A stretch of 63,308 bases of DNA from Cyanophora paradoxa CCMP329 (GCA_004431415.1 QPMI01000357.1:1-63308); one strand, 5' to 3'. Numbered from the stretch's first letter, positions 5,041 through 42,318 are shown. The notes: generated from the letters alone by a model not told the origin. Numbers and translations: made by a program.

Positions 5041-7403
5041 ATGCTCCAGCAGCGAATTCTGCACTATCTTCGAACGGGCCGCCTGGCGGTAGCGCCGGAG
5101 CGACCTGCGCGAGCCCATGCCAGTTTGCCGTCGCTGCTTCTGTCGTCAGCGAGCGCGGCGCGGCCGGAGGGCGCGAGGTGGACCGGCACCGCTCGTGCAT
5201 TGCTAAGCATGCAGCTCCAGCGTCGTAGCTGCGGCATCGCGTCGCTTCCCCAGCAGTTCCGGTCCAGCGCCGGCCCCACGAACTGGAGGGCCTCCCTCGC
5301 CCGATCACCTGCAGCGCCCGCGTGGTTGCTCAGCCGGCCGGTCACGCGCGTCGGCCGGCGACCTCTCTCGTCGAGCAGCGGCGAACAGCTCCCTGCAGCC
5401 GACCCGCACGCGCCTCCACTGGCGGAGCATCTGGCGGGGCCCGCAGCAGGCAGCGGCGAGGCAGCCGGTGGCGCGGAGGCTGCGCCCTCGCCGGCGGAGA
5501 TTAGCTCAGAGCCGTCACTATCAACTGGCGCGGATGTGCAGCAGCAGCAGCAGCCGGGGCGGCAGCCGAGGCAGTCGCGGCGGCGGGGGAGGAAGAAGGC
5601 AGCGGAGCAGGGGGCGGGGGAGTCAGCGGGGCCGCCGGGACCGGTGCAGCTCGAGAAGATGGCGCGCATCGACAAGGCGGCGGAGGCCTTCGGCTTCAAG
5701 CCGCCCTCCAAGAGGAGAGGGAAGAAGCGCGCGGCAGGGGCGGCAGGGGACGGGGCGACGACGAAGAAGGGCGGGCGGTCGAAGGCGACGGCGGAGGAGC
5801 AGGCGGCCGCGGCCACCGCCGGCGACGCGGTAGCGCAGCAGGCGGCAGCGGTGGAGCAGGCCGGCGCTCCAGCCCCGGGGCTGGCCCTCGAGGCGGGCGT
5901 CCCCGCGGGAGCGGACGCGGCCGGCGGGGCGGCGGAGGCTGAGAAAAAAGAGCGGAAGAAGAGCAAGAAGCAGCGCAAGAGGGAGGAGCAAAGTGCGCTG
6001 CGCGCGTCCCCACCCCGCTCCCTCCCCCTCGCCGCGCCGGGCGGCCGACGCGGGGGGCGGCGGGCAGGGGCGCAGGCGAAGAAGGAGGAGGAGCAGAGGG
6101 TGGCGAGGCGGCACCTCGTCAACATCATGGCGCGCCACCCGTTCGGGATGACCAAGCGCGTGCCGCAGGCCCCCGCGCCCCGCCTCGCCGGCCGGCCGGC
6201 CTGAGGCTCCGCAGGGACGGCGTCGACTCGTTCCTGCGCAAGTTCGACGCCTTCCCGGGCCGCTTCCCCTACGTCCAGTGGGCCGTGCGCCCCGCCCCGC
6301 CCCGACCCCGCGGGGTTTCTCTGAGGCGGCGGGGGCGGCAGGCGCTGCGGACGGCGGAGGACGACCGCCTCAAGGAGGAGCTCATCGCCAAGCGCGCCGA
6401 GCTGCTGCTCAAGCTCATGCCCCCGGGCCGCTTCCGCGACGTGCGCCCCGCCCCGTCCGCGCCGCGCCGCGCCGCGCCCCGACGCCGGGCAGTTCGTGGC
6501 GCGCTTCCCGGTGAAGTTCGTGGACTGCGAGAGGGAGGTCGGCCAGCGCGTCAAGTTCCTCACCCAGTGCGCCCCCGCGCCCCAGCCCGCCCCGCCCGCC
6601 CCGCTCGCCCCGCCCCGGCCCGACGCCGACGCCGGGGGGCGCTGCAGGGAGTGCAAGTTCATCCGGCGGGACATCTTCATGATGCTGAGCCAGCCGAAGG
6701 GCGTGGACTACCTGCTCAAGCTGCGGCGGGAGACGTGGGAGCGGAGCGTGCTCGCCCCGCTCCGCGACTTCGGCTTCAACGCCGACGAGACGCGGCGGCT
6801 CGTGGTCGGGCGCCCCGAGCTGCTGGCCGTGGGGGAGCCGCACTACATCACGGGCCTGGTGGAGACGGCGACGCGCGTCATGCCCTCCCTCCGCACCATC
6901 CTCGCCTCCGCCGACATCACCGACCGCGTCTTCCGCTTCACCTTCTTCCGCAAGGCCCGCCCCGCCCCGCCGCCCCCGCCTCGGCCTCTGACGCCGCCGG
7001 CGCGCAGCTCTTCGACTTCGACTTCCCGAACAACCTGTCGGGGATCATCCAGCAGCTGATGCGGGCGGGGTTCGACCAGGCCGGCGCCGAGGCCTTCATC
7101 CGCGAGTTCCCCGAGATCCTCTACTCCAAGGCCCTCCAGGACCTCAAGCCCAAGATCGACTACCTCGAGGCCCGCCCCGCCCCGCCCCGCCCCGCCCCCC
7201 GCCCCTCACCCCGCCGGCAGGAGAACCTCGGCATCAACGTCCGCAAGCTCGGGCCCATCATGATCGCCAACCACCGCAAGGCGCGCTCGCCCGGGCATCG
7301 TCTCCAGTCCCAGATCCGCGCCCCTGACGCTCCGCGACAGGCGGAGGACTCGCGTTACCCCAACATCGACTACCTCCTCTTCGTTCCCCGCCGCGCCTGG
7401 TGA
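5041..7403 (+). CDS. Organelle-targeted mTERF-like protein; spliced
   Basis: Arg/Ala/Ser-rich N-terminus (MLQQRILHYLRTGRLAV), low-complexity linker, then mTERF-like repeats: GFNADETRRLVVGRPELL and FIREFPEILYSKALQDLKPKIDYLE|ENLGI. Confidence 0.55.
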
Positions 7404-7637: not shown

Positions 7638-9130
7638 ATGATGCAGACTTGTTTCAGCGTCGGATCGCCGGCAGTGCCGCGCTCCGCGAGCCTGCACACG
7701 CACGTCACTGCAGGCAATCGGGCGGCAGCGTGCTCGCTGGCCCTCCCGGGCCCGAACATAAGAATCTTCAGCGTCGGCAAGTCGGCGGCCGGCGCGCCGG
7801 AGCAGGCAGATGCGACTTATGGTGTCACCATCCCTCGCACGAGGGGCTTCTTCTTCTCACGCACGCCGTCCGCCTTCCGGGATGCCGATCCCTCTGCCCG
7901 CTTCACCGCTGCACGCGCGGCACGGCCCGGCCGGCGTGCGGTCCCGGCGGTTCCGATCATTTGCATGCAGAGCTCCGGATCGCCTCCGGTGCGTTTACCG
8001 CCTGCGCCCGAGGCCGCCCGCCGCGCGTACGCATGACGGCGCACGTGTCGCAGATGAGCCCGAACGAGTACACGGAGAAGGCGTTCGAGGCGATCCAGCG
8101 GCTGCCGGGCATCGTGCAGTCCGCCGGGCAGCAGATGGTCGAGCCCGAGCACCTCATGCTCTCCCTGCTCGAGCCCGTGCGCCGCGCCCGCCGACCCGTG
8201 GCGCCGGCCGGCCCTCACGCGCGCGCAGGGCGAGATCGGGCTGGCGTGGCGCATCCTCGCGAAGATGGGCCTCAACGTGAACGACGTCAAGGCCTCCACC
8301 TCCCGCTACATCGCGAAGCAGCCGAAGGTCTCGGGCGCTGCAGCGCAGCCGGTGCGCCGAGGCGCCTCGCGGGGCGCGCGCGACCTCCCTCCCCGCGCCG
8401 AAGCCGACCAACGCCGCGCGGGGGCGCAGTCGCTGGGGCGGGGCCTGGCGTCGCTGCTGGAGCGGGCGGGGCGGGCGAAGGCGACCTTCAAGGACGAGTT
8501 CATCTCGGTGGAGCACCTGCTGCTGGCCTTTGGCGAGGACGAGCGCTTCGGGCGGGCGCTCTGGCGCGAGTTCGGCATCACCGAGGCCCGCATGCGGCAG
8601 GCCGTCGACGAGGTCCGCGGCAACCAGCGCGTCACCGACCAGAACCCCGAGGGCAAGTACGAGGTGCTCGAGAAGTACGGGCGCGACCTCACCAAGGCCG
8701 CCCGCGAGGGCAAGCTCGACCCCGTGCGCGCCCCGGCCCCGGCCCCCCGCCGCCTCCTCTCCCCTCCCTCCTGACGCGCGGGCCGGCAGGTGATCGGGCG
8801 CGACGACGAGATCCGGCGCGTGATCCAGATCCTCTCGCGCCGCACGAAGAACAACCCCGTGCTCATCGGGGAGCCCGGGGTCGGCAAGACGGCGATCGCG
8901 GAGGGCCTGGCGCAGCGCATCGTGAACGGGGACGTGCCGCAGAGCCTCAAGGACCGGCAGCTCATCACCCTCGACATGGGCGCCCTCATCGCCGGCGCCA
9001 AGTACCGCGGCGAGTTCGAGGAGCGCTTCAAGGTGCCCCCGCCCCGCCCCTCTTCGCTTTCTCCTCGCGGGGCGCTGACGCGTGCGGGCGGGGCAGGCCG
9101 TGCTGAAGGAGGTGCAGGAGTCGGCGGGGC

Positions 9131-9162
<32 letters not shown>

Positions 9163-11832
9163 GTGGTGGGCGCCGGCGGGGGCGGCGAGGGCGGCGCCAT
9201 GGACGCCGGCAACCTCCTCAAGCCGGCCCTCGCCCGCGGCGAGCTCCGCTGCATCGGTGCCCGCCCCCGCCGCGCCCCCCCGCCGGCCCCGCGGCGGCTG
9301 AGGGGGCGGGGCAGGGGCGACGACGCTGGACGAGTACCGGAAGTACATCGAGAAGGACGCGGCGCTAGAGCGGCGCTTCCAGCAGGTCTACGCGGGGGAG
9401 CCCGACGTCCAGGACACGATCTCCATCCTCCGCGGCCTCAAGGAGCGCTACGAGGTGCGCGCGGCGCGGCGCGGCGGGGCCGGCGGCGGGCGGCCCCCGA
9501 CGGGGCGGGCGGGGGCAGGTGCACCACGGGGTGCGGATCTCGGACGCGGCGCTGATCGCGGCGGCGACGCTCTCGAACCGGTACATCGCCGACCGCTTCC
9601 TCCCCGACAAGGCCATCGACCTCGTCGACGAGGCGGCCGCCAAGCTCAAGATGGAGATCACGAGCAAGCCGGCCGCCCTCGACGAGGTCGACCGCCGCCT
9701 CATGCAGCTCGAGATGGAGCGCCTCTCCCTCAAGAAGGAGACCGGCGCGCGCCCGCCCCGCCCCCTCCCGCAGAACGTCCTCGCGCACTCTGACGGGCGG
9801 GCGGGCGGGGCGCAGACAAGGCGTCGCAGGAGCGGCTGGAGGCGCTGGGGCGGGAGATCGACGAGGTGAAGGGGCAGCAGTCCGGGCTGGTGGCGCAGTG
9901 GGCGAGCGAGAAGGGCGTGATCGAGGGGATCTCGTCCCTGAAGGAGCAGATCGACGCGCTAAAGCTCGAGGTGGAGCAGGCGGAGCGCGACTACGACCTC
10001 AACCGCGCCGCCGAGCTCAAGTACTCCCGCCTCCCCGACCTCCAGCGGTGCGCCCCCGAGCCCCGCCGGGTGTAGACGAGCGGCGCGCCGAGGCGGGGCG
10101 GGGCGCGCGCAGGCAGCTGGAGGAGGCGGAGCGGACGCTGGAGTCGGGGAGCGGGCGCTCGATGCTCCGCGAGGAGGTCACCGAGCAGGGTGCGCCGCCC
10201 TCCCCGGAGGGACGCGAGCCCGCCCGGGCCGGCCCGGCGCGACGCGGTTCGGCGCAGACATCGCGGAGATCATCTCGAAGTGGACGGGGATCCCGATCAC
10301 GAAGCTGGTGGAGTCGGAGAAGGAGAAGCTGCTGAACCTCGCGGCCGTCCTCCACGAGCGGGTGATCGGGCAGGACGAGGCGGTGGACCTCGTCGCGGAG
10401 GCGATCCAGCGCTCGCGGGCCGGCCTCTCGGACCCCAACAAGCCCATCGCGAGCTTCCTCTTCCTCGGGCCCACGGGGGTCGGCAAGACCGAGCTCGCCA
10501 AGGCCCTCGCCTCCTACCTCTTCGACACCGAGGAGGCCATCGTCCGCGCCCCGCCCTCCGGCTCCCCGGCGCGGCCCCTCCCCGGCGCCGATGCTTTCGC
10601 GCGCGGCGGCAGGTGCGGATCGACATGTCGGAGTACATGGAGAAGCACAGCGTGTCGCGCCTGATCGGGGCGCCCCCGGGCTACGTCGGCTACGACGAGG
10701 GCGGGCAGCTGACCGAGGCCGTACGCCGCCGCCCCTACAGCGTCATCCTCCTCGACGAGATGGAGAAGGCGCGCGGGGCCGGCCGCGCGGGGCCGGGCGG
10801 GGCGGGCGGCTGGGCTGACGGGCTCCGGGGGCCGCAGGCGGCGCCGGACGTCTTCAACATCCTCCTCCAGGTCCTCGACGACGGCCGCCTCACCGACTCC
10901 CAGGCCCGCCCCGCGCCCCCGCCCCAGCCGCCGCCGCCCTCACGCCCCGCGCGCCCCGCAGGGTCGCACCGTGGACTTCAAGAACGCGATCATCATCATG
11001 ACGAGCAACGTGGGTGCCCAGTACATCATGGACATCGCCGGCAAGGCGCGCCCGCCCCGGCCCCCGCCGCGCGCCTCGCCCCGGCGCCGCGGGGGCTGAG
11101 GCGGGGCGGGCAGTCGGTGGCCGGGGGCGGGGCCGAGGACGTGGCGGCGTACGCGGAGATGCGGCAGCGCGTGGTGGAGTCGATGCGCGCCCAGTTCCGC
11201 CCCGAGTTCCTCAACCGCATCGACGAGGCCCGCCCCGCCCCGCCCCGCCCCGCCTGTTCTTCTTGCTCTGAGGCGCGGGGCGCAGTACGTGATCTTCCAC
11301 GCGCTCGACAAGGAGCAGCTGCGCGGCATCGTCCGCATCCAGGCGCGCCGCCCCGCCGCCCGCCCCGGGGCCCGGCTGGAGCTGACGGGGCGGGGCAGGT
11401 GGAGCGGGTGGCGGAGCGGCTGCGGGAGCGGAAGATCGCGCTGCGCATCTCGGACGCGGCGCTCGACTTCCTCACGGAGGTCGGCTTCGAGCCGATGTAC
11501 GGCGCGCGGCCCCTCAAGCGCGCCATCCAGCGCCACGTCGAGAACCCCGTGCGCCGCCCCCGGCCCCGGCCCGGGGCCGGGCGCGAGGGGGCCTCACGGG
11601 GGGGCGGGGCCAGGTGTCGAAGGCGATCATCCGGGGGGACGTGGCGGACGGGGACACCGTCTTCGTCGACTCCAGCGGCGACCACATCGAGGTCAAGGTC
11701 CGCCCCCGCCGCCCCGGCCCCGCGCCCCGCCCCTCGCCCCGCCCCCCGCCCCCCGCCCCTCTGACCTCGGCCGGTCGCCCCGCCCCCCCGCAGCGCCTCC
11801 CCTCCTCCGACTTCGCCACGCCGGCCGCGTGA
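7638..11832 (+). CDS. clpB: ClpB/Hsp100 disaggregase with plastid-type transit peptide; 19 exons, 18 introns
   Basis: KLDP|[49 protein letters not shown], long ClpB middle domain ([19 protein letters not shown]), [54 protein letters not shown] and [11 protein letters not shown]. All 18 introns restore the frame. Confidence 0.97.
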
Positions 11833-21512: not shown

Positions 21513-24500
21513 TCAGGCGGCGGCCTCGACGCCGCCGGGCTCGCCCTGGGGGTCCGCTTTGGCGGAGGGGGCGGCGAGGACGACGCGCCCCGCCTCGTCC
21601 ACGTCCAGCGCGATCCTGCGCGGGGCCCGCGTGGGCGGCTGCCGGGGGGTGCAGGCGGGGCCCGCCCCGCACCGGTCGCCGACGGAGACGCGCCCCGCGA
21701 GCACCGCGTCCGCCAGGAAGTCCTCCACCTGCGTACCCCCCTCGCCTCCGGAAGGCGGGGGCGGGAGCTGCGGGGGGTACGGCACCATGCTGGTGATGGC
21801 GCGGCGGAGGGGCCGGGCGCCGAACTTGGGGTCGTAGCCGCGGCGGCAGAGGGCGTCGAGGAAGGGGGCGGTGGCCTCGGCGGCGATGCCGGACTCGGCG
21901 TGCACCTCGGCCAGCGTCCGCGCGAGCATCGCCCCCGCGATCTCCCGCACCGTCCCCGCCCCCAGCGGCCCGAACGCGATCACCTGCGGAGAGGGCGTCG
22001 GACGAGGGAGGAGGGGCGGCGGGCGGGCGGGGGCGGGCCTCGTCGATGCGGTTGAGGAACTCGATGCGGAAGACGCGCTGCAGCGCCTCCATCACCACCT
22101 CCCGCCGCCGCAGCCGCCGCCCCTCCGCCCCCTCCGCCCCCTCCGCCCCCTCCGCCCCCTCCGCCCCCTCCGCCGCGCCTTGGCCCTCCTCGCCGGCGCC
22201 CTGCGCCCCGGCGGCGGCGGCGGCCTCGGCCTCCTCGCGGGCGGCCGCCTCCATCTCGGCGGCGATCTGCCCCGCCGCCACGTTGCTCGTCAGGATGATC
22301 ATCGTGTTCTTAAAGTCCACCGTCCGCCCCTGCGCGCGCCGAGGGGCGTCACGCCTGCCGCCTGGGGGCGCCAGAAGGGAGCGCCGAGGGAACAAGCCTT
22401 GGAGTCGGTGAGGCGGCCGTCGTCGAGGACCTGGAGCAGCACGTCGAAGACGTCCGGGTGCGCCTGCGGGGGGAGGGGGGGGGAGTGGGGGGGGGAGTGG
22501 GGGGGGGGGGGGGAGGCGGTGGTCAGCGGGGGCGCGCCGGGGCGTGCTCGAGGGGGCGGCGCGCCTTCTCGATCTCGTCGAAGAGGAGGACGGAGAAGGG
22601 CCGCCGCCGCACCGCCTCCGTCAGCTGCCCCCCCTCCTCGTACCCCACGTACCCCGGCGCGCTCCCGATCATCTTGTTCGTGCTCAGGCTGCGGCGAGAG
22701 GGCGGGTCGCGGCGAGGGGTGAGGAAGATCTTTAACGAGCTGGAGGGCGGGGGCAGGGCGGCGCGCCTGTCCATGTACTCGCTCATGTCGAGGCGGATGA
22801 GGGAGTCGGGCCCGAAGTAGGAGTCGGCGAGGGCCTTGGCGAGCTCCGTCTTGCCGCTCCCCGTCGGCCCCGCGAAGACGAAGCTCGCGATGGGGCGGGC
22901 GCGCTTGCGGAGGGCGACGCGGCCGCGGCGGACGGCGCGGGCGACGGCGCTGACGGCCTCCTCCTGCCCGACCACGCGCCCCCGCAGCGTCTCCTCCAGC
23001 CCCCGCAGCCGCTCCACGTCCGAGCTCGAGAGCTGCCCCCCCGTCAGGGGTACGCGATTCAAGAGGAGGGGGGGATGCGCGCCTTGGAGACGGGGACGCC
23101 GGTCCACTGGGAGACGACCTCCGCGACGTCCTCCGCCGTCACCTCCACCCTGGGAGGGGGGGAAGAGTGGGCGGGGGTACGGGAAGGGAGGGGCGGTGCA
23201 GCGGCTCACGAGTGGCGGGGCCGGGGGCCGCTGGAGGTGGCGGGGGAGGGGAGGGGCGGGGGGCTGGCGGGCCGGGGCGGGGCGGCCTCCGGGAAGAGGG
23301 AAGCGGCGGGGGACGGGGAGGGGGGCGGCGAGGCGTCGGGGGATTCGGGGGCCGGCGTGGGAGTGACGGAGGGGGAGGCGGGAGGGGAGGCGCTGCGGGG
23401 CGGGGCGGGCGGCCAGGGCGGCTGCGGAGGGGCGTCGGGGGTACGAGGCCTGCGCGGGAGGGAGGGGGGGTACCTGGTCGGTGACGATGGCGTAGGCGGC
23501 CTGGTCGTAGTTCGACGTCGTCGGGAAGGCCGTCTGGGCGAGTGATGTCAGGGGTACAGGGTTAGAGAGCCCTCCGGGGCGCGCGCCTGGGCGATGGGGC
23601 CGCCGGCGCCGGCGACGGTGGCGCGGATCTCGCGCTCGCGCTCCGACTGCCGCGCCGCCCGCGTCGCCTCCCTGCGCCGGGCGTCGGGCGGGCTCGAGCG
23701 CTGGCCCGGGGAGGGTCGGAGGGTACCGTATCTTGGCGCGGATGCGGGCCTCGACCCGCCGGTGAGCGTTCGCCTCCTCGAACCTGGGCGCCCCGTCGGA
23801 GGGGAGGGGGGGAGAGGGCGGGGCGGGGGTACAGGGGCACCGGTTGGCGCGGACGAGCTCGAGCTTGGCGCGCTGGACCTCCCTCACGGCCGCCTCCAGG
23901 TCCTGCCGCCCCTTTGCGCGATGCAGAGGGGAGAGGGGCTGGCCCCCCGCACCCGCACGTCCACGGCGGCGCGGGCGGCCCGGCGCGCCGCCCGCGCCGC
24001 CGCCTCATCGATGAGGTCGATCGCCTTGTCCGGCAGCCGCCGCCCCGCGATGTAGCGCTCCCCCAGCTGCGCGGCGCTCGGGGGGAGGGCGCGGGGAGGC
24101 GGGGGCGGCGGGGGCGCACGCGGCAGGCGGCGGCGAGCGCCTCGTCCGTGATCCGCAGCCTGCGGGGGCGCGTCGGGGGGGGGGGCGGTGGGGCGGGGGG
24201 GCGGGGGTCGGAGGGGGCGGGGGGGCGGGGGCACCGGTGGTGGGCCTCGTAGAGGGATCGCACGCCGTAGAGGATCTCGAGCGCATCCTCCGCGGACGGC
24301 TCCTCCACTGCGCGCGGGTGAGGGGCGCGGAGGCGGCGCCGGGCGCGGCGTGGCGCGGGGCGGGGCGGGCCGGTGACGGGCTGGAAGCGGCGCTCGAGGG
24401 CGGCGTCGCGCTCGATGTGCTTCCGGTACTCCTCCACCGTCGTCGAGCCTGCCCAGAGGTCGGGCGGGGCGAGGGCTGGGGGCCCTGCGCGCCCGCACCG

Positions 24501-26435
24501 ATGCACTGGAGCTCGCCGCGGGCGAGGGCCGGCTTGAGGACGTTGGCGGCGCTGATGCCGCCCTCCGCGGCCCCGGCCCCCACCAGCGTGTGGATCTCGT
24601 CGATGAGCAGGATGATGTCCCCCGCCCCCCGCACCTCCTGCGGGGGCCCGAGTGAGGGGCGCCCGGCGGGGGCAGAAGCGCGAGGGCGAGGGGAGGCGCC
24701 TGGATGATCTTGTTCATGCGCTCCTCGAACTCGCCGCGGTAGCGGGTGCCGCCGACGGCGGCGGCGAGGTCGAGCTGCACGAGCCGCTTGTACGCGAGGC
24801 ACTCCGGCACGTCCCCCTCGTCAATCAGCGTCGCCAGACCCTCAACGATCTGCCCGCCCTCCGGTCAGGGCGCCGGCGGCCGGTCGGGGCGATGGGGTGG
24901 CTCTGCGCACGGCGGTCTTGCCGACGCCGGGCTCGCCGATGAGGACGGGGTTGTTCTTCGTGCGGCGCGAGAGGATGCTGACGACGCGCTCGATCTCCTC
25001 GTCGCGCCCCACCTGCGCGAGCGCCGGCCGCCTCGGCGCCGGGCGAGCGGGCGGGCCGGGGCGGCGGTCTCGGCCGCGCACGACGGGGTCGAGCTCGCCG
25101 GCGGCGGCGAGGGCGGTGAGGTCGGTGGAGAACTGCTCGAGCGTCGCGAGCCGCAGGCGCTCCCGCGGGCGGCCGCGCAGCCGCGCCTCGAGCACCACCC
25201 GCTTGACCTCCGCCTCGAGCGCGTCCAGCTTGATGCCCCGCACCTCCAGGATGCGCGTCGTGAGGCTCTTCTTCCGGATCAGCGCCAGCAGCAGGTGCTC
25301 CGTCCCCACGAACTCGTCCCGCAGCTGCCGCCGCCGGCACCGCCTCGGCGGGCGGCGTGGGGCGGGGGGCGGGGCGGCGGGGCGGGGCGGCGGGACCTTC
25401 TCGGCCTCCTCGCGGGCCATGACGAAGGCCTCGCCCACGCTCGACGTGAACATCACCTGAGGGGACATCGGCGCCCGGGGGCCGCGGGCCGGGGGCCGGG
25501 GGCCGGGCGGGGGACCTCGGGGGGCACGAAGCCGATGCCGCGGCCGATGTACTCCTCGACCTGGCGCTGGCACTCCTCCACCCCGAAGCCCAGCGAGGCC
25601 AGCACCCGGTGCGCCACCCCGTCCTCCTGCGCGCCCGCCTCGCCCCCGCGAGGCCGCCGACGGGGGCGCCGCGCCGCACCTCCGCGCAGACGCCGTAGAG
25701 CAGCACCTCCACGTCGCAGTAGCTGCGCCGGCCCCGCTCGCGCCGCGCCCTTCCATGGGGGAGAGCGGGGACCGCGCACTGGTGCCCCAGCCGCCGCGCC
25801 TCCTCGCGCGCACGCTGCACCGCGCCCCGCGCCGCCTCCGTGAAGTCATCTGCGGCGCCCAGCCTCGTCCGGCCCGGCCGCGCGGCGGCGGGCGCGCCCG
25901 GGGCCGGCTCACCAGGGATCACGTCCTTCGCGGCGGCGATCCACGCCCGCGGCTCCGGCCACGCGCTCTTGCCGCTGCCGCCGCGCACTCAGCGCCGGCG
26001 AGACACGTTGGACGAGTTCTGGGCGCGGGGGACGGGCGTGCGGCGGCGGGGACGGCGGCCAACCGTGCGGCCGGCGGCACGCGTACGTGAACGGTTACTC
26101 GGACGCGCGGCCCGCGGGGACTAGTCGAACTAGACAGTCGCCTAGGATCGCGTACGGCCCGTCGAGGCACTCGCCGACGGCGTCCGGCCGCCGCCGATCC
26201 GGCGCGCCCCAAGACCTGCCCGGACGCACCTGGAGTTGCAAAATCGAGCGTTTGGTAGTCCCGCCAAGAACAGGGATCGCTGGGCCGCGAGCCCTTTACA
26301 CCTCGCACGCGCGCCTCGCACCCCGCCAGAAATTGAAGCTGGCGCGTGCCTGACCGCGGCCGAGATTCGCCCGTGGGATACGCCTCCCACCGGCAGCGCC
26401 ACGGGCGCAACCGGGGCAATGAAAGCCGCCGACAT
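21513..26435 (-). CDS. clpC: ClpC/ClpD-like Hsp100 ATPase with plastid-type transit peptide; spliced
   Basis: Presequence [16 protein letters not shown], Clp N-domain repeats ([22 protein letters not shown]), [28 protein letters not shown], short UVR-like middle segment (KLELVRANR|FEEANAHR) rather than a ClpB M-domain, [15 protein letters not shown] and [15 protein letters not shown]. ClpC versus ClpD is not resolved. Confidence 0.88.
22120..22173. repeat. 9-bp coding tandem repeat, about 6 copies, encoding (AEG)n in the ClpC-like second ATPase domain
   Basis: (CCCTCCGCC)n on the + strand, translating as [20 protein letters not shown] on the - strand. Confidence 0.85.
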
Positions 26436-30049: not shown

Positions 30050-33000
30050 TCACAGGAAGAGGCAGAGGCGGATGGTGCCCTGGCGCCAGAGGCGGGCGGG
30101 GTCCTCCACCCGCACCAGCCGCACCCGCTCCGCCGAGCCGGCCCCGTACACCCTGCCGCCTCCGGCTCGAGTCCGGAGCGCCGGGGCGGGGGCGGGGCGG
30201 GGCGGACCGGACGATCCAGAAGCGGGCGCGGGCCTCCTCGGCGAGGCGCATCTCGGCGGGGGAGATGGGGAAGAGCTCCTTGCCCAGCGCCGCCGTGCTC
30301 TTGACCTCCACCAGCGTCTCCTGCGCCCTCCGCTCGAGGCGGCGGGTGGGCGGGGCGGGGCGCGGGGGCCGCACGTGGCCCTCCGGGGAGCGCAGGCGGA
30401 GGTCGAAGCTGGCGCCCGTCTCGCGCGCCGCGTTGAGCCACTCCACCGCGTGCCCCGCCGGCACGCTCGCCCGCAGGAACCGAAAGACCAACTCCTGGGG
30501 GGAGCGTCGCGGGGGCGGGGGCGGGGCGGGGGCGAGGAGGAGGGGAGGGGGGCGGGGCACCTCGCCCCAGCGCCCGATGGCGAGGCGGCCCTCCTCCGAG
30601 AGGCCCTCCCCGACCTGCCCCGGGCCCCGCCCCGCGTCGCTTGGGGCGCGGCGAGCTGGCGGCGAGGGCGGGGGCACCTCGGCGGGGATGCTCGGCAGCG
30701 CCTCCCGCAGGCGCCCCGCGATCTCCTCCGTCGACACCACCTGCGGCCCCGCGCGGCATGGATCACGCGCCGGCGCCTCCGGGCGGGCCGGGGCGAGCTC
30801 GAGGGCACCGCGACGCTGGGGTCCCGCTCGGCAACCCACTCCCAGGGAGCCGCCTCCCCCGCGCCCGCCTCCCGCCGCCACGTCTGCGGCCCCCCCCCGG
30901 AGCCGTCGCCGGCCCCGTCCCCCTCCAAGGGACCCCGCGGCTCGTCTCCGCCCCACGCCCCTCGCGGCGGTGCGTCTCCTCGCGGGGACCGCGGCGCGCC
31001 ATCCGAGCTCCCCTCTTCCCGCGCGGACCGGGGCCTGTCCGCCGCCTCCTGCGGTGTGCTCTCCGAGCCCCCGAGCCCCTTGCGGCCGCTGCCGGAGCCG
31101 GCAAGCAGGCCGGACCCTTCGAGCAGCGCCGTGTTATGCGGTGCGCCGTCGCTGCTTGCGCGCGGGGCGCCCGCCGCCGCCGCCGCCGCCGCCGTGGCGG
31201 CGGCCGCCTTTGCGGCCCGCTCCTGCTCCTCATCCACGGGCTGCAGGTGCCTCCCGAGCGCCTCGGGGGGCGGGGGCGGCCATTGCCGCTTCGCCTTCTC
31301 CTGCTAGGCAGGCTCAGCAGGGGAGATGCCTTCGACATCCAAGCGCACGCAAAGCAAGCGCACGTCTCTGCTCGGGGGCGGGGCGACCGCGACGGCGGGG
31401 GCGGTCGTGGACTGCGGGGGCCACGCCTGCGACGTGCGCTGCCGCGCCGGGGCCCGGGCCCCCTTCCCCTCCGCCTCCTCCTCGGAGCTCGCGGCTTCCT
31501 CGTCGGCCTCGCGGCGCTTCTGCGCGGCGCGCCGCTCCACCTCCGCCACGTCGGCGTCCACCGGCGCCCCCGCCGCGACCCCCGCCGCGACCGCCCTGCC
31601 CCGCACGTCGGCGCCGCCCGCCACGCGCGCTGGGACGTGGGGGCGCTCGAGCGCACCGGGGCAGCTCCCAGCGGGGGTCGGCCTCGGGGAGGGGCGGGAG
31701 GCGGCGGCCGTCGGCGACGAAGGCCTCGCGGGCCGGCTCCGGGGTGAGGGCGAGGGAGTAGAGGAACTCGGCGAGCTGCGCGCTCGCGGCGCCCCCGAAG
31801 AAGAGCCCTGCCGCACGAGGAGGCCTGAGCTCGGGGCGAAGCAGCTCCCTCGGGCGGGGCTCGGGGGCCCCGCGCACGCGAGAGCTCCTTGAAGATGGGG
31901 CCGTACTCGTCGGCGCTCTGCGCGCCCCGGCGTCGAACGGCGCGCGAGAGGGGGCGGCGCGGCTCGGGGCGGGGCGGGCCTCGAGCTTGACGTAGAGCCA
32001 GGTGCCGTCGAGGGCGCACTTGACGTGCTGCCGCTCGGCGGCCCGCCCGCCGGGCAGCGCGAACTGCACGAAGACGTCGTTCGTCACGGAGACCCTCAAG
32101 GCCGCCACCCGCTGCGCCACGCCGGCCGCCTGCAACCTGCGCCCCGGCCCGCGCCCCGCTCGCGATTGCCCCCACGAGACGGTGTGCAGAGGGCGCGGCA
32201 CCGGGCGTAGTCGTCGGGGAAGACGTGGCGGACGAAGCGCTGGGCAAAGGGCATCAGCTGCCGCACCGTCTCCTCGATCTGCCGCCCCGCTCACGTCCCC
32301 GGTCCGGCCCGCATCAGCAGGCAGCTGGTCGAAGACCGACCTTCGTGTTAAAGTACGTCCCATAGGTGACCACCTGCGAGAGTTCGACGGTGTCATGATT
32401 TTGGTGCAGAAGAGGACGAGCGCGGCGAGAGGCACCTGGCGGCTGACGATGCTGCTCAGCAGGGGCACGCCGATCGTCGCGAGGAAGGGGAGCGGGTCGC
32501 GCTCCTGGCGCTCCGCGGCCTGCCCGGAGCAGCGTGTCGGGAGCTCAAGTTAGAGTCAGATGAGCGCAGACTCACTCTCGTCTGGACGTCGAGGAAATGC
32601 ACGCCGGGCACGGCGGCGAAGTGTCCCGCTATCTGCACCCCCACATGATCCGCGTGAACTCGGGCAGAAGGCGGTGGAGCAGGGGCACCTCGGCGTCGTC
32701 TGCCACAATCGGCTCCTCCGCGAGCGTCACCCACGCCTGCCGCCCGGGCTCAGAAGCCGCGGCGGGCCGCTGGCGGGTAGCTCGCCTTTCGCTGCGTCGG
32801 GAAGATCGCCGCCTTGAGGAGGGCGGGGCGCCAGTACATCTGGTCGCAAGGCCGAGGGCGAGGCGGTCGGGGCGGGGGCGGCGGGAGGTGAACGCGAGAC
32901 GAGGGGGCGGGGCGCACGAGCACTTGCGGGACGTCGACGCGGCCCTCGGCGATGGAGGCCGCCCACATGGCGAAGACGGCCCTCACCTGCCCCCGCCCCG

Positions 33001-36000
33001 CCCTTCAGCGCCCCCCCGCCCGCCCTCCCCCCGCACGATCCGGGGGCCCACGGGCTCGCCTGGTTGCCCGCCTCGTCCGTGCTCTTCGTCTCCGCGATGC
33101 CGGCGAGCGCCGCGAGGTACTGCGCGTGCGCGGAGCGCGCGCTCAGGACGCGGCGCGGCGCGGCGCGGCGCGCGGGTCGAGGCGGGGGCGGCGCCTGCTC
33201 GAAGGACGGGACGGTCGCGATCACGTCGTTCAGGAAGCCGTCCAGGGGCTTGTAGTACCGCACCAGGCACCGCAGGTGCTGCCCGCCCACGATCAGGACC
33301 ACAGGGCCCGGGCCCGGGCGGGCGGGCCGGCGAGGTGCGGACCTGGTCCATGACGCGCGAGGGGTCGTACCAGGCCACCTCCTCCACGCGGTAGAAGCGG
33401 CCCTGCCGGCGCCGCCAGCGCTCATGATCAGCCGGCGGGGCGGCCTCGAGCGGGGGTGCGGGGCGGGGGCGGGGACCTCGACGGGGGCGTGCGGGTCGTT
33501 GCGCTCGAGGTAGAGGGGCACGAAGAGGAGCGCCCCGCCCCGCAGCGCCTCCACCACCCCCTGCCCCCGCTTCAGGGTCGCGCCCGAGCCGGCTCGCGTC
33601 CGGGGGGTGGGTGCGGACCGCGCGGCCCTCGAACGCGGGGTCGAGGAGGAACCTGACGGACCGGAGAGAGTCAAAGGAGCAAACCAGGAGGCGCTGAAAC
33701 TTTGAGAGGGCCCACCTGTACACCTCAATGAACTGGGCCGTGCTGGCGCTGAAGGTCCCCCCCGAGGAGGCCGCCGACCGGCTCCAGGACTTCAGGATCG
33801 CCAGCATCTGCAACGCGGTGGGGGTGTCAGGGGCGAGGAGGCCCGAGCGGAGCGCGCGCGCGGCGGGGCCGGCCTCGGCGTGCTCGACGCGGTCGCGCAT
33901 GCCGAGGGCGCGCGCGAACTCCCGCGACTGCAACTCGGCGCCGGCGTACTCGACGCGCGCGCCCAGGAGGGCCTTGACCTGCTTCACGTCCCGCCAGAGC
34001 AGGCCCGGCAGGTAGAGCCGCCCCTCCGTCCACGAGGGCACCCACGCCAGGCCCCGCAGGAACAGCACGAAGGACGAGTCCGTCGCGAAGGAACTGCGCG
34101 CGACGCCGGCGGGCGGCGCTCGGCTCGCCGGCCGAGTTCGCGGCCGGCGGACGGCGCGGGCGGACCTCGAGCTCGAGTCGTCGGCGCCGCGGCTGGCGAC
34201 CCGCACGCGGGCGCTGGTGGCGTGCTCGAAGTCGCTCTTCCAGCGCAGGTCAATTTTCCGGACGAGTTCCTTCATGAGATGCCAGCCTTTCGACGAGACC
34301 AGCTGCCTCCCGTGCGCCTCGGGGCGGCCCGCCGCGGCGTCGGCGTCCGGCAGCCGGTGCTTCTGCGCGCGTGCAGTCCAGTCAACGTCACGCCGCGCCG
34401 TGCACACGCGAGCAGCGAGGCGGGCGGCGCCTGTAGGATGCTGTGGACGAGGGCCTCGAGCTCCTCGCAGCGCCAGTCCTGCTCCACCAAGTACGGCGCC
34501 CCCTCGCCGCCCTCGCCGTCGGCCCGCGCCGGCCACGCCACCGACCGCCACGCGCTCTCCTCCTGCGCCCGCCGCCGCGCTCAACGGCGCAGCCGCACGC
34601 GGGGCGGGCGGCGGGCCTTGTTCGCGACGGTCACGGAGGCGCGCTCGGGCGAGAGGAAGTCCGTAACGCCCAGCCGCTCGAACAGCTCGCGCCACGTGAG
34701 CGCGCCGCCCGCTTTCCCGGCCGCGCGCTGCAGGTACGGCGTCTCGCCCAAGACGATCCACTCGAAGCCGGCGCCTGCGAGCGCGAGCGGAGACGCTTCA
34801 GAGATGCATGCGCGGAGCTGGAGAGGAGCATGCACAGCGCGAGCGCGCCAGAGAAGTACTCGGGAAGGTTCGTGTGGTTGCCGAGCTTCACGGAGAAGTG
34901 AACGCGGCGGGCCGCGGGGACGTCTCGGAGGCGGACGGGGCCCTGGCTCGTCGCGACGACCGCCCCCGCGCGGAGACGGTCGAAGAGCGTCGCCGCCTGG
35001 GATCTGTCGCGCGCCTGGAAGTTGCAGGTCTTGCAGTTCGGGATGTGCTCCTGAGGGCAGCCTCGCACGCGCCGCAACGCCGGTGGGGCATGCGCAGAGC
35101 CGAAGCGGTCGCACCCGCATGAAGGCGAGGTAGCGGGCCCACCTCTCGGCGTCGGCCTGGGTGGAGGCGGGGGCCTCCTTGGGCGGGGCGCAGGCGGGGA
35201 GGACGACGAGCTCGGCGGCGTCGTGGGCGGTGATCTGCGCCACGCCGAGCCGCTCCAACATCGCCCGGCACATCGTCCGCCCCACCTGGCCCCGCGCGCC
35301 GCGCCGTCACGACCGGCGGTGCCGCGAGGAGCTGGCCATATGCATGGGCGGCACCTCAGAGGGGATGGAGGGGAGGAGGTCGGGGTGGAGGAAGGGGATC
35401 TCGCCCTGGAAGGAGGCGAGCGCGCCGGCCGCCTGGGCCGCCGCCAGCGGGAAGAAGACCTGCGCGGGGCGCGCTGCGGGGTCGGGGCACGGGCGGAGAC
35501 GGCGCCGGCGCCCGCGGGCGCGCCTTGGCGTCGGAGAGGGCGACGAGGCGGCGCTGGCTCTCGTCGCCGCCGGGCCCCGCGACCGGCAGGATCGGGAGGG
35601 CCCTCGCCCGCGCCAGCTCCTCCGCCGTCATCGCCCCGTCCTGGCCCCACCTCGGAATATGAGCTGCGCATGCGGAAGAAGGCCCAGGGGGCGCAGATGG
35701 AGCAGACCTGGACGCAGTGGAAGAGGCACGCGAGGAAGCCGCCGATGAACGGCAGGGTGAGCCCGGACCGCCCCTCCGCGTCGCGCACCATGGCCAACGC
35801 CAGCTCGATGAGATGGGCGGCGGAAAAGAGCTGCGCGGGACGGAGTTTTCTCGGCTCTGGCGATTGCAACTCTCGCCCTGCAGAAACGCGAGGACTGACG
35901 GGTATGCCGAGGGAGCGGCGCAGGGGCTCGGAGATGGCGATGTCGCGGTGCAGGTAGTGCAGCCCGAGGTACCTGACCGCGATGCCGCGCGAGGGCATCG

Positions 36001-39000
36001 GACACTAGTACTCCCGCGGGAGGCGGCGGCGGCGCGGCGGCGGCAGCGCGCACCGCTGTAGCATGTCGGGGGGGACGAGGTCGTGCGCGCTCGACCCCGG
36101 GCGCGCGAAGACGACCTGCACCAGGGAGCTCAGTCGCGCACGGCCAACAGCAGAATGGGCAGCGGCTCGCCTGGTTTGGCAGAACCCACTCGCCGCTCTC
36201 AGCGAGCATGCACTTCGTCGACCTGCGGGCGTCGGGGTCGGCGTCCACACTCTGAGGGGCGGCGCGGGGCGCACCGGAGGCTGCGGAGGATGAGGGTGGC
36301 GGACGACTGGAAGAAGCCCGTGACCTGGCCCTCGAGGGGCACGAAGCGCAGGTAGAAGGAAGCGACCTGCAAGCGCCGGCAGTGAGAGCACGCCTGGGCC
36401 GGGGGGGAGGAGGCGGCGGACCTCGGCGGGGGAGGCGGAGCCGCCGAGCTCACGGAACGCGGCGATGGCGCGCATGAACAGGCCCGGCACGGCGTCTGAA
36501 AACCCGCGGCCGGTCGCGAGCGCGTCGCAGGGGCGCTGGCGGCGGACGGGCGGCGGACCGCGGATGATTTGGTTCCAGGGGGAGTCCGCGTCCACGTCCT
36601 GGCGCGAGGAGGGGACGAGGAAGTCCGCCTGCCGCCGCCCCCGACAGAGATCAGCGAGTACGAGCTGCACGCCACTGCGAAGTCGCGCACCTGGATGATG
36701 AACTTGAAGCCGTAGGAGCGGACGGGCAGGTACGCGAAGACCTGCGACCGCGGTCAGGAATACGACCAAAGCCGGGCCGAGCTCGAGGAGAGGCGGATCC
36801 GGACCTGCTGCGGAGGCAGCGGCTCGCTCTCGTCCTCCGCAGCGCCGGAGAACAAGGGGAACGCAAGCGCCACCTGCGATTGTTGCGCTCGCGATCGCTT
36901 GCAGCGTGCGCGGCCGCCAAAGAACAGAGAAGACTTGCCTCGGTGCTATCTACGCCCGGGCGTCGATCCGAGCGCGCCGCTATGGCCTCGCGGATGACGA
37001 GGTAGCGCAGCTTGCCGCTCTGCACGCGATCGCGAGGACAGCGCGGATCAAATCGAAGACAAGATCAGGAGGACGGGGCATCTCGGGGCGCCTCGTTGAG
37101 GATCTCGACGATGCCGTTGCCGAGGTCGCGGCGCTCCATGAAGCGCTGGCGATCCCCCTCCCGGTCCACGATCGCGATCCGCCGCAGCTGCGCGCGAGGC
37201 GCGAGGCGCGTCGTGCGGAGGCATCGCGCGGGATCGCACGTGCGCGCAGCGCGCACTTTGTTGAGGAAGAGGAGGAGCGAGTCGTGCACGTCTTCGAACT
37301 TGACAGACACCAGTTGCTGCTTGAAAATAAGAGGAAGGCGCGAAAGGATGTGCGGCGAGAAAGAGCACGGACTTCATCATCGCCTGCACGGCGCCGGAGG
37401 GGGAGCGAGATGCGAGTCCGCCACTCGTGCGCCGGAGGCCAGCCGGCCGCGGCCGCGGACAGCTGAGCGAAGGGATCTCGTTGGTGCTGCAGAGCACCGT
37501 CCGCCTCTACCCAGTGAGGGAGGATGAAGCCCAGCGGCCCGGCCGAGTCCAGGTCGAACTAATCGAGGTTATTTCAATGTGACCGTGATGCCAACAGCAC
37601 TTGAAGCAGAAGCGACATGCCTTGATGTGGAATCCGTTGGAGTGGATCTCAGGTGCCGATGTCACGCGGAAGACACTCTGGGCGGCCGATGGGTAGCCCG
37701 GCGGCGGGTCTGAGGCGCCGCAAGGTGCACCTTGAACCCGATGCCTTTGGCGCCGATGTATCCCGTCTGCTTCTCCTTGGTGGAGCGGCCGACGTCGCAG
37801 AGGGCCCGCACGTTGCGCTCCGTGAAGCCCGTCTGCACGGCCCATCGCGAGTGAGGGCGGGGCTCTGGCGAGGGCCCTCGACCACCTCATCTCACCTCGT
37901 TGTTGTAGACGTCGACCCGGCTCCCGTCCAGGACAAACGCCAGAGAAGGAAGGACCTCCTCTCCGTAGCGGTTGTCGTCTAAAGAGGGCGCGCATCAAAC
38001 TGGAGCGGATCGGAGCAGCAATCAGGGAACACAAATCAAGTACCGGCGTTCTGCACGAGCTCCAGAACGAAGTGCTGGCGGTGGCCGGTTAGCTTGCAGT
38101 GGAGTATGTATTGTCGCAGTTATGGTGGGCGGCCGTGGCCACGAACCGTGTCCGTGCTGTAGAGTTCGGAGGAGAGGCGCGCGAGGGCGCGGCCGAGGCG
38201 CTCCTGCTGCACCCCCATCGCCCTGCGGCCCTCCTCGTCCAGCTGCCCGGCGCCGCCGGCGCCGTCAGATATCGATCAAGAGTCATGTCGATCACAGCCG
38301 CGCGGCCGGCGGCCCCTTAAGTTTACCTGCACTCCGATGGCGAACTCGTCGCGCCGAATGCTCTCCACAATCGCGCGGCAAACGGCCTCCTCCGCCTCCC
38401 GCGCCTGCGAGGCGGCCTCGAGGCTGCCGGGCGCGAGCCCCAGATCACGGTCGACGGCCGCCTGCAGCTCGAGCTCGGAGTCGGGCTCGCCGCCCGGCCG
38501 CGGCGGCAACAGAGTCGGAGACGGGTCCGCAGCCATGGCGTCGAAGAGCAGCGATCGCGAGGCGGCGGGCGGGCTCGATGACGCTCTCTCCGCGAGCGTG
38601 GTGAGGCCGCCCCGAGCACCCCGCTGTCTCGGCTCCTGCTGCCGCGCAGGCACCTCGTGGGCGTGACCGGCAGCGCGCGCAGATGCAACCTCGTGGCGGA
38701 AGTGGGCCACAGCGGATGGCAGGCCGAGGTGCAGGCCGACGTCGATCAGGGCGGCGCGCTGCTGCGGCCCGCGGGAGGCGGCGAGGAGGGCGGGGAAGGG
38801 GTCCCCCTCGAGGGCGGCGGAGGCGGGGCCGAAGACGAGGTCCTGGGCCATGGCCCGGCGGAGAAGGGGCGGCAGGGCGAAGAGGAAGTTGGATGCGAAG
38901 GAGGCCGCGCGGGATGCTCCGTCGGCGCCGTGGCCCTGCAGCTCGCGCAGCGCCTGCGCTGGCGAGTGAGACGGCGCATAAGCACACGCGCACACGGCGA

Positions 39001-42000
39001 CGCGCACAGTTTCGCAGTGGCGCGCGAGGAGCTGCATGGGCGCGTGGTCGACGCCCCCGCAGGCCGCGACGACAGCCGCGGCTTGCGCCGCGGCGGCCTC
39101 CGCATTGCCCGCCCCGGCGGCCGCCAAGAAGAGGTCGGGGTCTGCCGGCTCGGGGAGGCGCACGGCCGAGCCGTCGGCGCACACGAGCACGGGGAGCGGC
39201 GTCGCCTCGTGCTCGGCGGGGGCGGGGCGGGAGAGGAAGGAGGGGAGCGGGCCGACGTCCGGGGCGCGCGAGAAGGCGGCCTCCCAGGGGAGCACCTCCT
39301 CGAGGCGCTGCAGGGCCGGCGCCGCGGCGAGGAGCGCCCGGGCGGCCTCCCGCGTGCTGGCCTCCTCGGCGGGCGGCTGGGCCAGCCCGGCGGGGTGCCG
39401 CACGGAGCAGACGAGCGCCGCCTCGTACGCGAGGGCCGCCGGGCCCGCCGCCGGCGCCTCCCGCTCCGCGACCCGCGCCGCGATTCGTTGCACGCTCCCT
39501 GCAAGACGTGCACGTCACGATCAGCCGCCCGCGAAACCCTTGCAGAGTGGACGAGCGCACCGAAGCGAAGCTGGGTCACGGACTGGACGCCGAAATGGAC
39601 GCAGAGGGCGCGCTCGACGGCGGCCAAGGCGGCCTCGGGGAGCTGGCCCGCCCCCAGGGCCACTCCGCACGACCTCATGCACTGCCGGCAGAAAATTGCG
39701 AACGCATCAAAATGACGAAACGCGCGCGCACAGAGGTGGAACGGAGCGCGCACCTGCGCGGCGACTTCGAGCAGGGTCTCTTCTGAGATCGGGTGCGCAT
39801 ATGGCCCGCCGACTGCACCCGTAGCCGCAGTGCCGCCGCCGGCGCCTCCGCTAGCACACCAGTCGTCCGCTTCCGGTGCCGATGCGCGGGCAGGGCCGAA
39901 TCGCTCGGGGTGGGCGGCGAGGAATGCGAGGAAGGACGAGCCCAGCCCGAGACACTCGAACGTGCGCGCGTGGAAGTGCACGCAGATCGCCTGCACCCGA
40001 TCGCGAGTCAAGATCCAGACCAAGCGAGGAGCAAGAGTTCCTTCTGACCTGCTCGAGGGAGGCGAGGGTGGCGAGGCCGAGGGCGGAGGGGTCGCCCCCC
40101 GCCCGCCGCTCCACCTCCTCCAGCACCTCGTCCGCGCTGGGGCCCGCCGCCGCCGTCTCGAGAGCGCGGCCCCCGTGGTCGCTGCCGGCCGTGGCCCCGG
40201 CTCCTGCGACAAGTGCGTGAGAGAATGCTGCGGCGCACGGCGCGCAGAGCGCACCACTGCTGACGCTCGATGGTGCGCTTTGTGAGGTGCTCTGTAGAGC
40301 CGCATCGAAGAGCTGCCCTGGCGGGAGCTGCGGTGGTCCGGGCCCGGGTTGGTCGGGGGGGGGGGGGGGGGGGGGGGTATATATGCGTATGCATATGCAT
40401 GGACCTTCCGAGCGGAGAGGGACGCGCGGTAGCCCCGCAGGTACGAGACGGCAATCTGAAAGCACGCCGTCAAACCAGAACTCATCATCCATAGACTCAT
40501 GAAAACAGTAAAGCGAACTTTGCACAATACGGCCAGGGATCCGGATCCGGAGCTGCTCGATGCGCGTTTCTTCGAATTTGCAGACGACTGATGCTGAAGT
40601 AAGAGTGACAGAGCTTTCTGCATCTGGTGTGGCGCGCGGGGCTCAACACTGAATTGCGTTGTGGTGCGCGTAGCTAGGCAGGCCCACGGACGAGCACTTG
40701 CCTGCTCAGCGACGGATGCACGAGAGGCGGCAGGGTCGTTGCTGGCGGTCATCCACGTTCGAACGAAGGCCAGCACGTCCTCCTCCTGTGAATTCGCGAG
40801 CATGAGCGGATCTCTAATCTCCAGCCGCGGGCGGCGGATTCGGACGAACCTCGACGGGTTGAGCCTGCGCCACAGCGATGTGTCGGTGCACATCCGCCTC
40901 AAGCTGTCTCCGCCTCGCGTCCTACGAGCAAAGTGAGAGCGTCAGAGCGCGACGATGCGTCCGCGGCGTATAGATACCCGAGCTTGCTGCACGGCTTCGA
41001 CCGCTCGGGCCTTCTCTTGAGCTTCTTCTTTGTTTGCCTGCGCACAAACATCAGAGCCACTGCAAAAACCGCCGGAGCGAGGGGTCCGTGGCCATGGACG
41101 CACTTGAGACGTCAGGTCTTTGTTGAAGGCCGCGATTTTCGAGCGCAGCGCGCGGTCCACGTCCCCCATCGTCTTGATGTAGAGGCCAACCCCGTGGACC
41201 TGGCGCGATGTTTTGGCCTTTCGAGTTGAAGATGCATCCGGATAGGTGGCGGGGGCTAGCCTTTATGCATAACTCAAGGGGGTCCGCCACCTGTCTGAAA
41301 GGACGATTAGCTTACTAGGGGAGGAACGGGGGAGGAACGGGGGAAGAGGGGGGGGGGGGGGGGGGGGGGGCGAGTGGACGCGAGGGGGGGGGGGGGGCGG
41401 GCCGGAGGGGGAGGGGAGGGATCGGGAGGGGGGGGTGTTCGCGATCGGGGGGAAGGAGGGGGGGGGGGGGGGGGGGTGGCACCGCTTTATCGCAAGCCAG
41501 CGGACGAACTCGGGTGTGTCCACCTTCTCGCCCCATTTCTGTACACGAGAAGAGCATAAGCGCATGCACACGCGTACAGAGCATAGGCGTCGAGCTCGAG
41601 GACCCGACTGTTCAGGTAGGTGCGTAGCGCAAGGGCGACATCGGCCGACGTTATCGCGGGCGCGGCTGTCAGAGAGGGCGGCGGGCTGAAGCCCCTGATG
41701 ACCAGCGGATGCTTGATAAGGGGCCCTGCAGACAGGCGTTTGAGTGCAGGCAGAGATCCTGCGCGCGCGACCGCGCGAGCGAATGCGTCAACGTACCGAG
41801 GCGGAGCGCGGCGTAGTTCGGCACTGCCTCCGCCGCGCAGACCTCTTGTTCGATCTCCCATAGCGTGACGATGGGGCGTTGATTCATGAAAGTCTGACGC
41901 GTGCGCGCATGCATGTGAGCTCGCCGGCCGCGGCCGCGGCCGCGGCGCCCGCGGCCGGCGCAGGCGCGTGCACGCGCTGGCCGCCTTCTTACCTGGATAA

Positions 42001-42318
42001 AGCAGAATACCTTGTTTTCTAACTCAAAAAGCTCCTTGAGCGCCGGGATTTCGTAGGGCCGACCCTAGCGCATTTGACAGGTCATGGCGCGCGCCGGACA
42101 AAACCCCACCACGGACTTACCACGCATAGATCTTCATAGCGCGCAACGTTTAGCCGCGTGCGGATGATGTTGATCACGTCGGGCGCGTTGACGCAGCGCC
42201 CAGCGCCGTGCAGCTCGTCGCGCACCGCCGCGGCGAGGTTCGCGACCTCTCGCTTGGTGTATGTACGTGCCGGAGGGGCTGTTGGTCGCACCAGGTGCTG
42301 TCGCATGGCTGCTGTCAC
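30050..42318 (-). CDS. NO VEIN/sacsin-like giant protein: GHKL (Hsp90-like) ATPase plus C-terminal DUF3883; many exons, start approximate
   Basis: IVESIRRDEFAIG, ELYSTDT|HFVLELVQNA|DDNRY, YNNE|GFTERNVRALCDVGRSTK...YIGAKGIGFK|SVFRVTSAPEIHSNGFHIK, ADFLVPSSRQDVDADSPWNQ, and the C-terminus IGRWGE|ELVFRFL...VEWLN...GASFDL...LVEVKST...FPISPAEMRLA...FWIVR|VYGAG. Stop at 30050. Confidence 0.88.

Follow-up and report, generated by a model that had tools for sequence, protein, structure and literature searches.

Frequent GC-AG introns and a C-rich donor code in a nuclear contig of the glaucophyte Cyanophora paradoxa

About three in ten of the introns catalogued in contig tig00001416, nuclear DNA of the glaucophyte Cyanophora paradoxa CCMP329 (GCA_004431415.1, QPMI01000357.1), begin with GC instead of GT. 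The contig, all 63,308 nucleotides (nt) of which were analysed, is referred to here as the window, and the introns of its ClpB gene form the core of the evidence. These GC-start introns are confirmed as real and unusual: they number 52 of 171 (30%, 95% confidence interval [CI] 24-38%), where a rate near 1% is the norm. The C. paradoxa genome has a GC content of 67.6% and carries 9.2 introns per gene, with introns averaging 86 bp; the paper that describes it makes no statement on splice-site sequence (Price et al. 2019, PMC6704402). A literature search, with most subscription journals outside its reach, found no paper describing GC-AG introns or the donor code in Cyanophora.

The ClpB gene (7638..11832, + strand) has 19 exons and a product of about 1000 amino acids, as judged from its open frame, homology and Pfam matches. 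With all 18 introns (52 to 96 nt) removed, the frame stays open for 999 codons from 7641. The product is 57 to 58% identical to bacterial ClpB, single exons match the Pfam domains Clp_N, AAA and AAA_2, and the N-terminal extension resembles a plastid transit peptide. The 18 introns, which were written down before the RNA result was seen, are as follows (a slash marks the exon-intron border).

7989..8053, +, intron 1, CCG/GTGCGT; RNA piece ends at 7987
8177..8228, +, intron 2, CCC/GTGCGC; record-length subtraction and frame
8352..8429, +, intron 3, CCG/GTGCGC; RNA piece starts at 8429, homology
8724..8789, +, intron 4, CCC/GTGCGC; RNA piece ends at 8723, homology
9033..9096, +, intron 5, AAG/GTGCCC; RNA joint
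9257..9314, +, intron 6, TCG/GTGCCC; RNA joint
9455..9518, +, intron 7, GAG/GTGCGC; RNA joint
9745..9815, +, intron 8, GC-AG, CCG/GCGCGC; RNA joint in three runs, only GC..AG register
10048..10112, +, intron 9, GCG/GTGCGC; RNA joint
10190..10257, +, intron 10, AGG/GTGCGC; RNA joint
10542..10612, +, intron 11, ATC/GTCCGC; RNA joint
10769..10837, +, intron 12, GC-AG, AAG/GCGCGC; RNA joint in three runs, register
10904..10961, +, intron 13, GC-AG, CAG/GCCCGC; RNA joint in two runs, register
11046..11113, +, intron 14, GC-AG, AAG/GCGCGC; RNA joint in two runs, register
11228..11285, +, intron 15, GC-AG, GAG/GCCCGC; 56-nt RNA piece 11284-11339, homology
11343..11398, +, intron 16, GC-AG, CAG/GCGCGC; RNA joint, homology
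11549..11613, +, intron 17, CCC/GTGCGC; RNA joint in three runs
11698..11793, +, intron 18, AAG/GTCCGC; 82-nt RNA piece ending at 11695, three runs

For the RNA check, contigs from four runs were compared with the region 5900-11880: three RNA-like runs, each of a different study, and one DNA-like run, X15. These run types are guessed labels; the X15 contigs cross the introns unchanged, and none of the ClpB joints is among the joints listed for that run. Among the joints listed, at least 12 ClpB introns were seen at exactly the predicted lengths in two to three RNA-like runs from separate studies, each contig showing that a joint exists and not its rate, so that minor use of other donors is possible. 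The other six (7989, 8177, 8352, 8724, 11228 and 11698) are supported by piece ends and record lengths. At the GC joints 9745, 10769, 10904, 11046 and 11343, GC..AG is the only register ending in AG, and no register gives GT..AG. The intron at 11228 is set by the 56-nt RNA piece that precedes the next joint, and its best GT alternative scores 26 bits lower against a profile of 89 ClpB proteins (retrieved by a ClpB exon search; bacterial where named, the Cyanophora protein itself not among them). All six GC donors that the first-pass annotation had proposed for this gene are thus backed by RNA, and nearby GT donors are ruled out as the true sites by the RNA registers and homology. That annotation had all 18 sets of coordinates right, but its statement that conservation fixes the introns overstated its basis, because conservation alone leaves alternatives within 2 bits or better for five of them (7989, 8177, 10048, 11046 and 11698), which the RNA settles. 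At intron 16, an in-frame GTCCGC located 12 nt upstream is passed over in favour of CAG/GCGCGC, so exon context can outweigh U at +2.

The six GC donors among 18 compare with the 1% norm at p = 2e-8. Position +4 is C in all 18 ClpB donors, where the C content of the individual introns would predict 10.0 (p = 5e-6), and none of the 18 has A at +3 or +4, just as had been noted from the sequence alone.

The wider catalogue comprises 171 introns from 11 window genes, of which 24 are supported by RNA, 57 are fixed by conserved motifs and 90 were placed by reading frame and splice signals. Because the model that produced these 90 scored the donor, a donor-blind set was analysed as well; its 141 introns are either RNA- or motif-fixed or were recovered by a model knowing only GT/GC. 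The GC donors make up 29 of the 81 introns in the RNA and motif sets and 50 of the 141 in the donor-blind set. Public gene models agree with the catalogue for all seven introns of the OTU gene and for 10 of the 11 in the nucleotidyltransferase gene, including all seven of its GC donors; accordingly, GC introns already sit unremarked in public annotation.

Position +4 holds C in 142 of the 171 donors (83%; 24/24 among the RNA-supported introns), A in 19, G in 5 and T in 5. Each intron's own composition predicts only 87 with C, so the reading of +4C as mere intronic background is rejected. The claim of an invariant +4C held for ClpB and for similar high-GC genes but not across the window, where the donors GTAAGT, GTGAGC, GCAAGT and GCGAGC also occur. 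The commonest donors are GTGCGC (42/171) and GCGCGC (20/171), and 66 of the 171 conform to GYGCGY. Relative to intron bodies, and conditional on the preceding base, observed/expected ratios are 1.4 for A, 2.2 for G, 0.5 for C and 0.2 for T at +3, and 1.7 for A, 1.4 for C, 0.29 for T and 0.12 for G at +4; against intron bodies, G at +5 stands at 2.6, and +6 gives 1.3 for C, 1.2 for T, 0.5 for A and 0.35 for G. The donor-blind set yields the same pattern. The background-corrected motif is G-Y-R-M-G-Y, which amounts to the usual GTRAGT but with C also allowed at +2, +4 and +6. The AT-richer introns, most of them in the long gene at 30-42 kb, include the donors GTAAGT, GTGAGT, GCAAGT and GCGAGC, and their +3A and +4A stand at 3.3 and 2.5 times expectation. 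At +4, A outnumbers U by 19:5 against a local supply of 1:2 (p = 5e-6), and A versus C follows supply (p = 0.27).

The exon side of the junction differs strongly between the two donor types. The share of GC donors is 53% (40/75) after AG, 19% (10/54) after other G and 5% (2/42) after non-G (Fisher p = 1e-8), in line with the earlier suggestion that exon-side AG compensates for GC. The companion claim, that the six GC donors in ClpB all follow an exonic G, stands, and G precedes 50 of the 52 in the window; A precedes the two exceptions, 6156 (CAA/GCGCGT, backed by an RNA piece of 88 nt) and 28726 (model only). G at -1 and G at +5 occur together in 43 of the 52 GC donors and in 51 of the 119 GT donors (p = 1e-6). 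Within the GT class, +5G is found in 37 of 40 donors without -1G and in 51 of 79 with it (p = 8e-4). Both bases are therefore conserved and compensate each other, as in major (U2-type) introns. A trade-off between U5 loop 1 and U6 ACAGA pairing, with two donor classes, was described by Parker et al. (PMC11732430); human GC sites, 0.87% of the total, require both -1G and +5G (PMC11732430).

The introns are also removed from RNA with GT/GC..AG ends, as in the major class. Their median length is 64 nt. The acceptor is a near-fixed GCAG, with C at -3 in 166 and G at -4 in 139 of the 171. Candidate branch motifs resembling CTGAC, CTCAC or CTGAG are found in 122 of the 171 at a median of 17 nt from the 3' end, a raw count, uncorrected for chance, from a gene model that itself scored such motifs. 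A polypyrimidine tract is absent in all 171; the 5' halves are C-rich and the 3' ends G-rich. Minor U12-type introns were considered and rejected, the combination of an RTATCCT donor with a CCTTRAC branch point occurring in 0 of 171.

The explanation that we favour, with a probability of roughly six in ten, is that these are ordinary U2-type introns read by small nuclear RNAs (snRNAs) with standard pairing ends, GC drift and spliceosome tolerance accounting for the donors. Under it, U1 ACUUACCUG and U6 ACAGAGA would be kept as the standard pairing partners, and strong drift towards C/G would carry every donor position as far towards G or C as the spliceosome tolerates (G at +3, C at +4, C at +6), with C at +2 taken up when the donor is otherwise strong. 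Recognition would rely on exon-side AG, through U1 and U5 loop 1, together with +5G, through U6 C42; a GT donor could then lose either of the two, and a GC donor would need both. Acceptance of A or C and rejection of U and G at +4 would be expected if a methylated U6 adenosine, rather than a Watson-Crick partner, lies opposite that position. Methylated U6 disfavours +4U in Arabidopsis and fission yeast (PMC9803359), and among 240 fungi the +4 preference shifted with no change in U1 or U6 (PMC10581693). Compositional drift is extreme: synonymous pyrimidine sites in ClpB show a C:T ratio of 128:1, and in intron bodies C is seven times as frequent as T after G. Because +2C is tolerated more broadly than composition alone would predict, some relaxation of +2 proofreading is probable; the very short introns and the near-fixed GCAG acceptor may help.

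Several observations weigh against this explanation. Pairing of the donors to canonical U1 is weak, with a mean of about 4.7-4.9 of 9 positions, and at +6 C is favoured as much as U, although U would be expected opposite a canonical A. A single gene without an RNA check, the long one at 30-42 kb, contributes most of the +4A excess; among the 81 introns fixed by RNA or motif, only 3 have +4A, against 4.9 expected. The share of GC donors changes little with composition, being 26% at a GC:GT supply of 2.4 and 37% at a supply of 23, a flatness that indicates either that donors lag behind a recent change in composition or that +2 proofreading is relaxed in trans. Finally, Rfam searches at the gathering and E-value thresholds detected no U1, U5, U6 or other snRNA in the window.

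The first-pass annotation had proposed instead that the 5' end of U1, the ACAGAGA box of U6 or their cofactors may be altered. In its general form, a modified major spliceosome (in the U1/U6 base opposite +4, or in U1-C, LUC7, SNRNP27K or a proofreading factor) that makes +2C/+4C near-standard in ordinary, non-mobile introns, independently of local composition, is a tentative idea with the odds against it. The RNA part of the proposal is disfavoured, since the Mamiellales consensus coexists with standard U1 and A prevails over U at +4. It is rather doubtful that U1 (or U6) has co-evolved to place G opposite +4C, as in Mastigamoeba balamuthi, with a standard copy possibly serving the +4A donors. 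Such a change would suit the 83% overall frequency of +4C and its presence in every RNA-supported intron, and there are parallels: the GUGCGC consensus accompanies U1 ACGUAC in M. balamuthi, Physarum is said to have both standard and modified U1 copies (both bioRxiv 2022.06.08.495308), and the U6 ACAGA adenosine is changed in C. merolae (PMC10581693). On paper, a G5 U1 also pairs better with GT donors (-7.1 versus -3.9 kcal/mol), but this argument is circular. However, with G opposite +4, U should be accepted through wobble pairing and A should be penalised, and the observed pattern is the reverse; the predicted signature, acceptance of C and U and rejection of A, is absent, a result that comes mostly from the one long gene without an RNA check. 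A motif like the Mastigamoeba-type U1 5' end at about 42576-42584 (- strand) has no U1 structure or Rfam match and was dismissed as chance. For C. paradoxa, 77 minor introns are reported but U11 alone was recovered, interpreted by the authors as a sign of possibly transformed minor splicing machinery (PMC10639083); this hints at possibly diverged snRNAs in the species.

The cofactor part is plausible, because composition alone fails to explain the rate of GC donors, but still unlikely as the main cause. It would keep the snRNAs standard, let a changed protein (U1-C, LUC7, SNRNP27K, Prp8, Hub1 or a proofreading helicase) accept +2C/+4C, and make drift secondary. Consistent with it, GC donors remain at 26% overall and 43% after AG in the AT-richer introns, the GC content of introns with GC and GT donors is alike (p = 0.26), and three GC donors occupy the same positions in Clp paralogs that are only 50-54% identical. 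The AT-richer introns may, however, have lost GC recently, with their donors lagging, and even after AG the GC donors are about 7-fold below supply (ln ratio -1.9), which means that +2C is still selected against. A further scheme, in which the intron ends pair (donor GYGCG being complementary to acceptor CGCAG) and so select +4C opposite -4G, or in which the introns are introner copies, is highly improbable. The consensus ends are indeed near-complementary, given the strong -3C and -4G, and Micromonas introners have 53% GC donors within AG/GYGCGT (PMC3879977). Yet +k/-k covariation is lacking (532 pairs versus 545 in permutations), an intron's own arms have no pairing advantage over arms taken from different introns (p = 0.67), the folding of real introns does not surpass that of chimeras (p = 0.26), and the introns do not group into similarity families (best-hit identity 0.69 versus 0.68 in shuffles). 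By these four tests end-to-end pairing, hairpin specificity and introner origin were all rejected; the arms can pair generically, not intron-specifically, and intron ends that lack covariation give no indication of element-specific terminal inverted repeats.

Besides ClpB, the following window genes bear on the catalogue.

3315-4807, -, OTU gene; public model tig00001416_g8949.t1 (EukProt EP00741)
5993..7340, +, 8 introns of the upstream gene, 4 with GC donors (6156, 6955, 7170, 7281); listed RNA joint for 7281, piece ends for the others, frame
about 12100-15912, -, IRE1-like gene with luminal region, kinase and RNase domain, 15 introns counted; Pfam Ribonuc_2-5A
21616..25912, -, 22 introns of the Clp paralog, 8 with GC donors; conserved AAA motifs and frame
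30153..42120, -, 60 introns of a long gene with a GC gradient, 15 with GC donors; frame and signals, catalogued without RNA
44956..47152, +, 11 introns of a nucleotidyltransferase gene, 7 with GC donors; 10/11 as in public model g8958.t1, Pfam

The long gene (30050-42306 in full, - strand, more than 60 introns) encodes about 2500 amino acids, and presumably resembles the NO VEIN/sacsin-type ATPase proteins; Pfam gave no confirmation from two short exons, and one exon had zero matches in a representative protein library. Along the gene, intron GC content climbs from about 0.5-0.7 (5' end) to 0.9 (3' end). This gene also supplies most of the +4A donors (GTAAGT, GCAAGT, GCGAGC and GTGAGT), and 41 of its introns were recovered without donor information at +3..+6 or fixed by motif. 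The IRE1-like gene has a single GC donor, AAG/GCGAGC. Of the earlier labels, "SMYD" and "ClpC-like" were assessed by motif only, and "mTERF-like" found no Pfam support in a search with the largest exon.

Four exact intron positions are common to ClpB (9257, 10769, 10904 and 11228, + strand) and the Clp paralog (24498, 22564, 22397 and 22038, - strand), and at three of them both genes have a GC donor preceded by AG; these positions reflect either shared ancestry or parallel gain at AG/G sites. In the spliced ClpB transcript, a second reading frame is stop-free for 1003 codons, a by-product of extreme third-position GC content (GC3) that bears on the long overlapping open reading frames reported by Price et al. 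2019. Elsewhere in the window, a tandem array at 49277-63308 consists of units about 1.7-2.8 kb apart, the long ones holding a 12-nt G/C minisatellite in about 93 copies; it has no Rfam match and is possibly subtelomeric or centromeric. Apparent single-base frameshifts near 27230 (+), 890 (-) and 37400 (-) in otherwise intact genes are probably long-read assembly errors in G/C runs.

The donor code of C. paradoxa is of a known kind, and both possible outcomes for its U1 have precedent. Haptophytes are among the lineages reported to have genomes rich in GC donors. The closest likeness is to the Mamiellales, exemplified by Micromonas, which share with Cyanophora the pattern Y+2, G+3, C+4, G+5 and Y+6, exon-side AG, frequent GC donors, a putative branch motif of CTGAC type and a GC-rich algal genome. 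Canonical introns of Micromonas favour AG/GTGCGT together with a CTGAC branch; GC donors reach 53% in one introner family (Verhelst et al., PMC3879977). That share belongs to the one introner family, whereas the GC donors of Cyanophora lie in unique introns; in addition, +6 is mostly C in Cyanophora and T in Micromonas, the distance of the branch-like motif to the 3' end is about 17 nt in the former and 43-52 nt in the latter, and Cyanophora, unlike Micromonas, is intron-rich. The GYGCGY donors of Mamiellales and the +4C of Thecamonas both coexist with standard U1 (Roy and Bowser, bioRxiv 2022.06.08.495308). In contrast, M. balamuthi, which has the same commonest donor as Cyanophora, GTGCGC including +6C, combines it with a compensated U1 (ACGUAC) (bioRxiv 2022.06.08.495308); compensation is demonstrated there, and the retention of +4A and rejection of +4U argue against it in Cyanophora.

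Pelagophytes and Symbiodinium resemble Cyanophora in having GC donors far above the norm. In pelagophytes, GC-AG introns make up 14-17%, a level ascribed to high GC content (bioRxiv 2024.10.30.620910) and below the Cyanophora share and its CI. Symbiodinium uses GC, GT and GA donors (PMC5177918), and the Cyanophora catalogue covered GT and GC only. Human-type donors, as analysed by Parker et al., follow the same rules, in that GC needs -1G plus +5G and GT trades exon strength against intron strength, and +4U is disfavoured under known donor rules and in Cyanophora alike. The difference is that GC sites are so much rarer in human and that most of those in Cyanophora lack A at both +3 and +4. In practical terms, GC donors must be allowed for in any annotation or read mapping of the Cyanophora genome. 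At about nine introns per gene, this genome would offer far more sites than intron-poor cases for finding the bases that make +2C tolerable. A standard U1, the expected outcome, would be a modest comparative result. Nevertheless, a glaucophyte now joins the short list of lineages with +4C donors and abundant GC donors, and because that list is split between standard U1 (Mamiellales, Thecamonas) and co-evolved U1 (Mastigamoeba), Cyanophora provides a further independent test that could help show when snRNAs follow splice sites.

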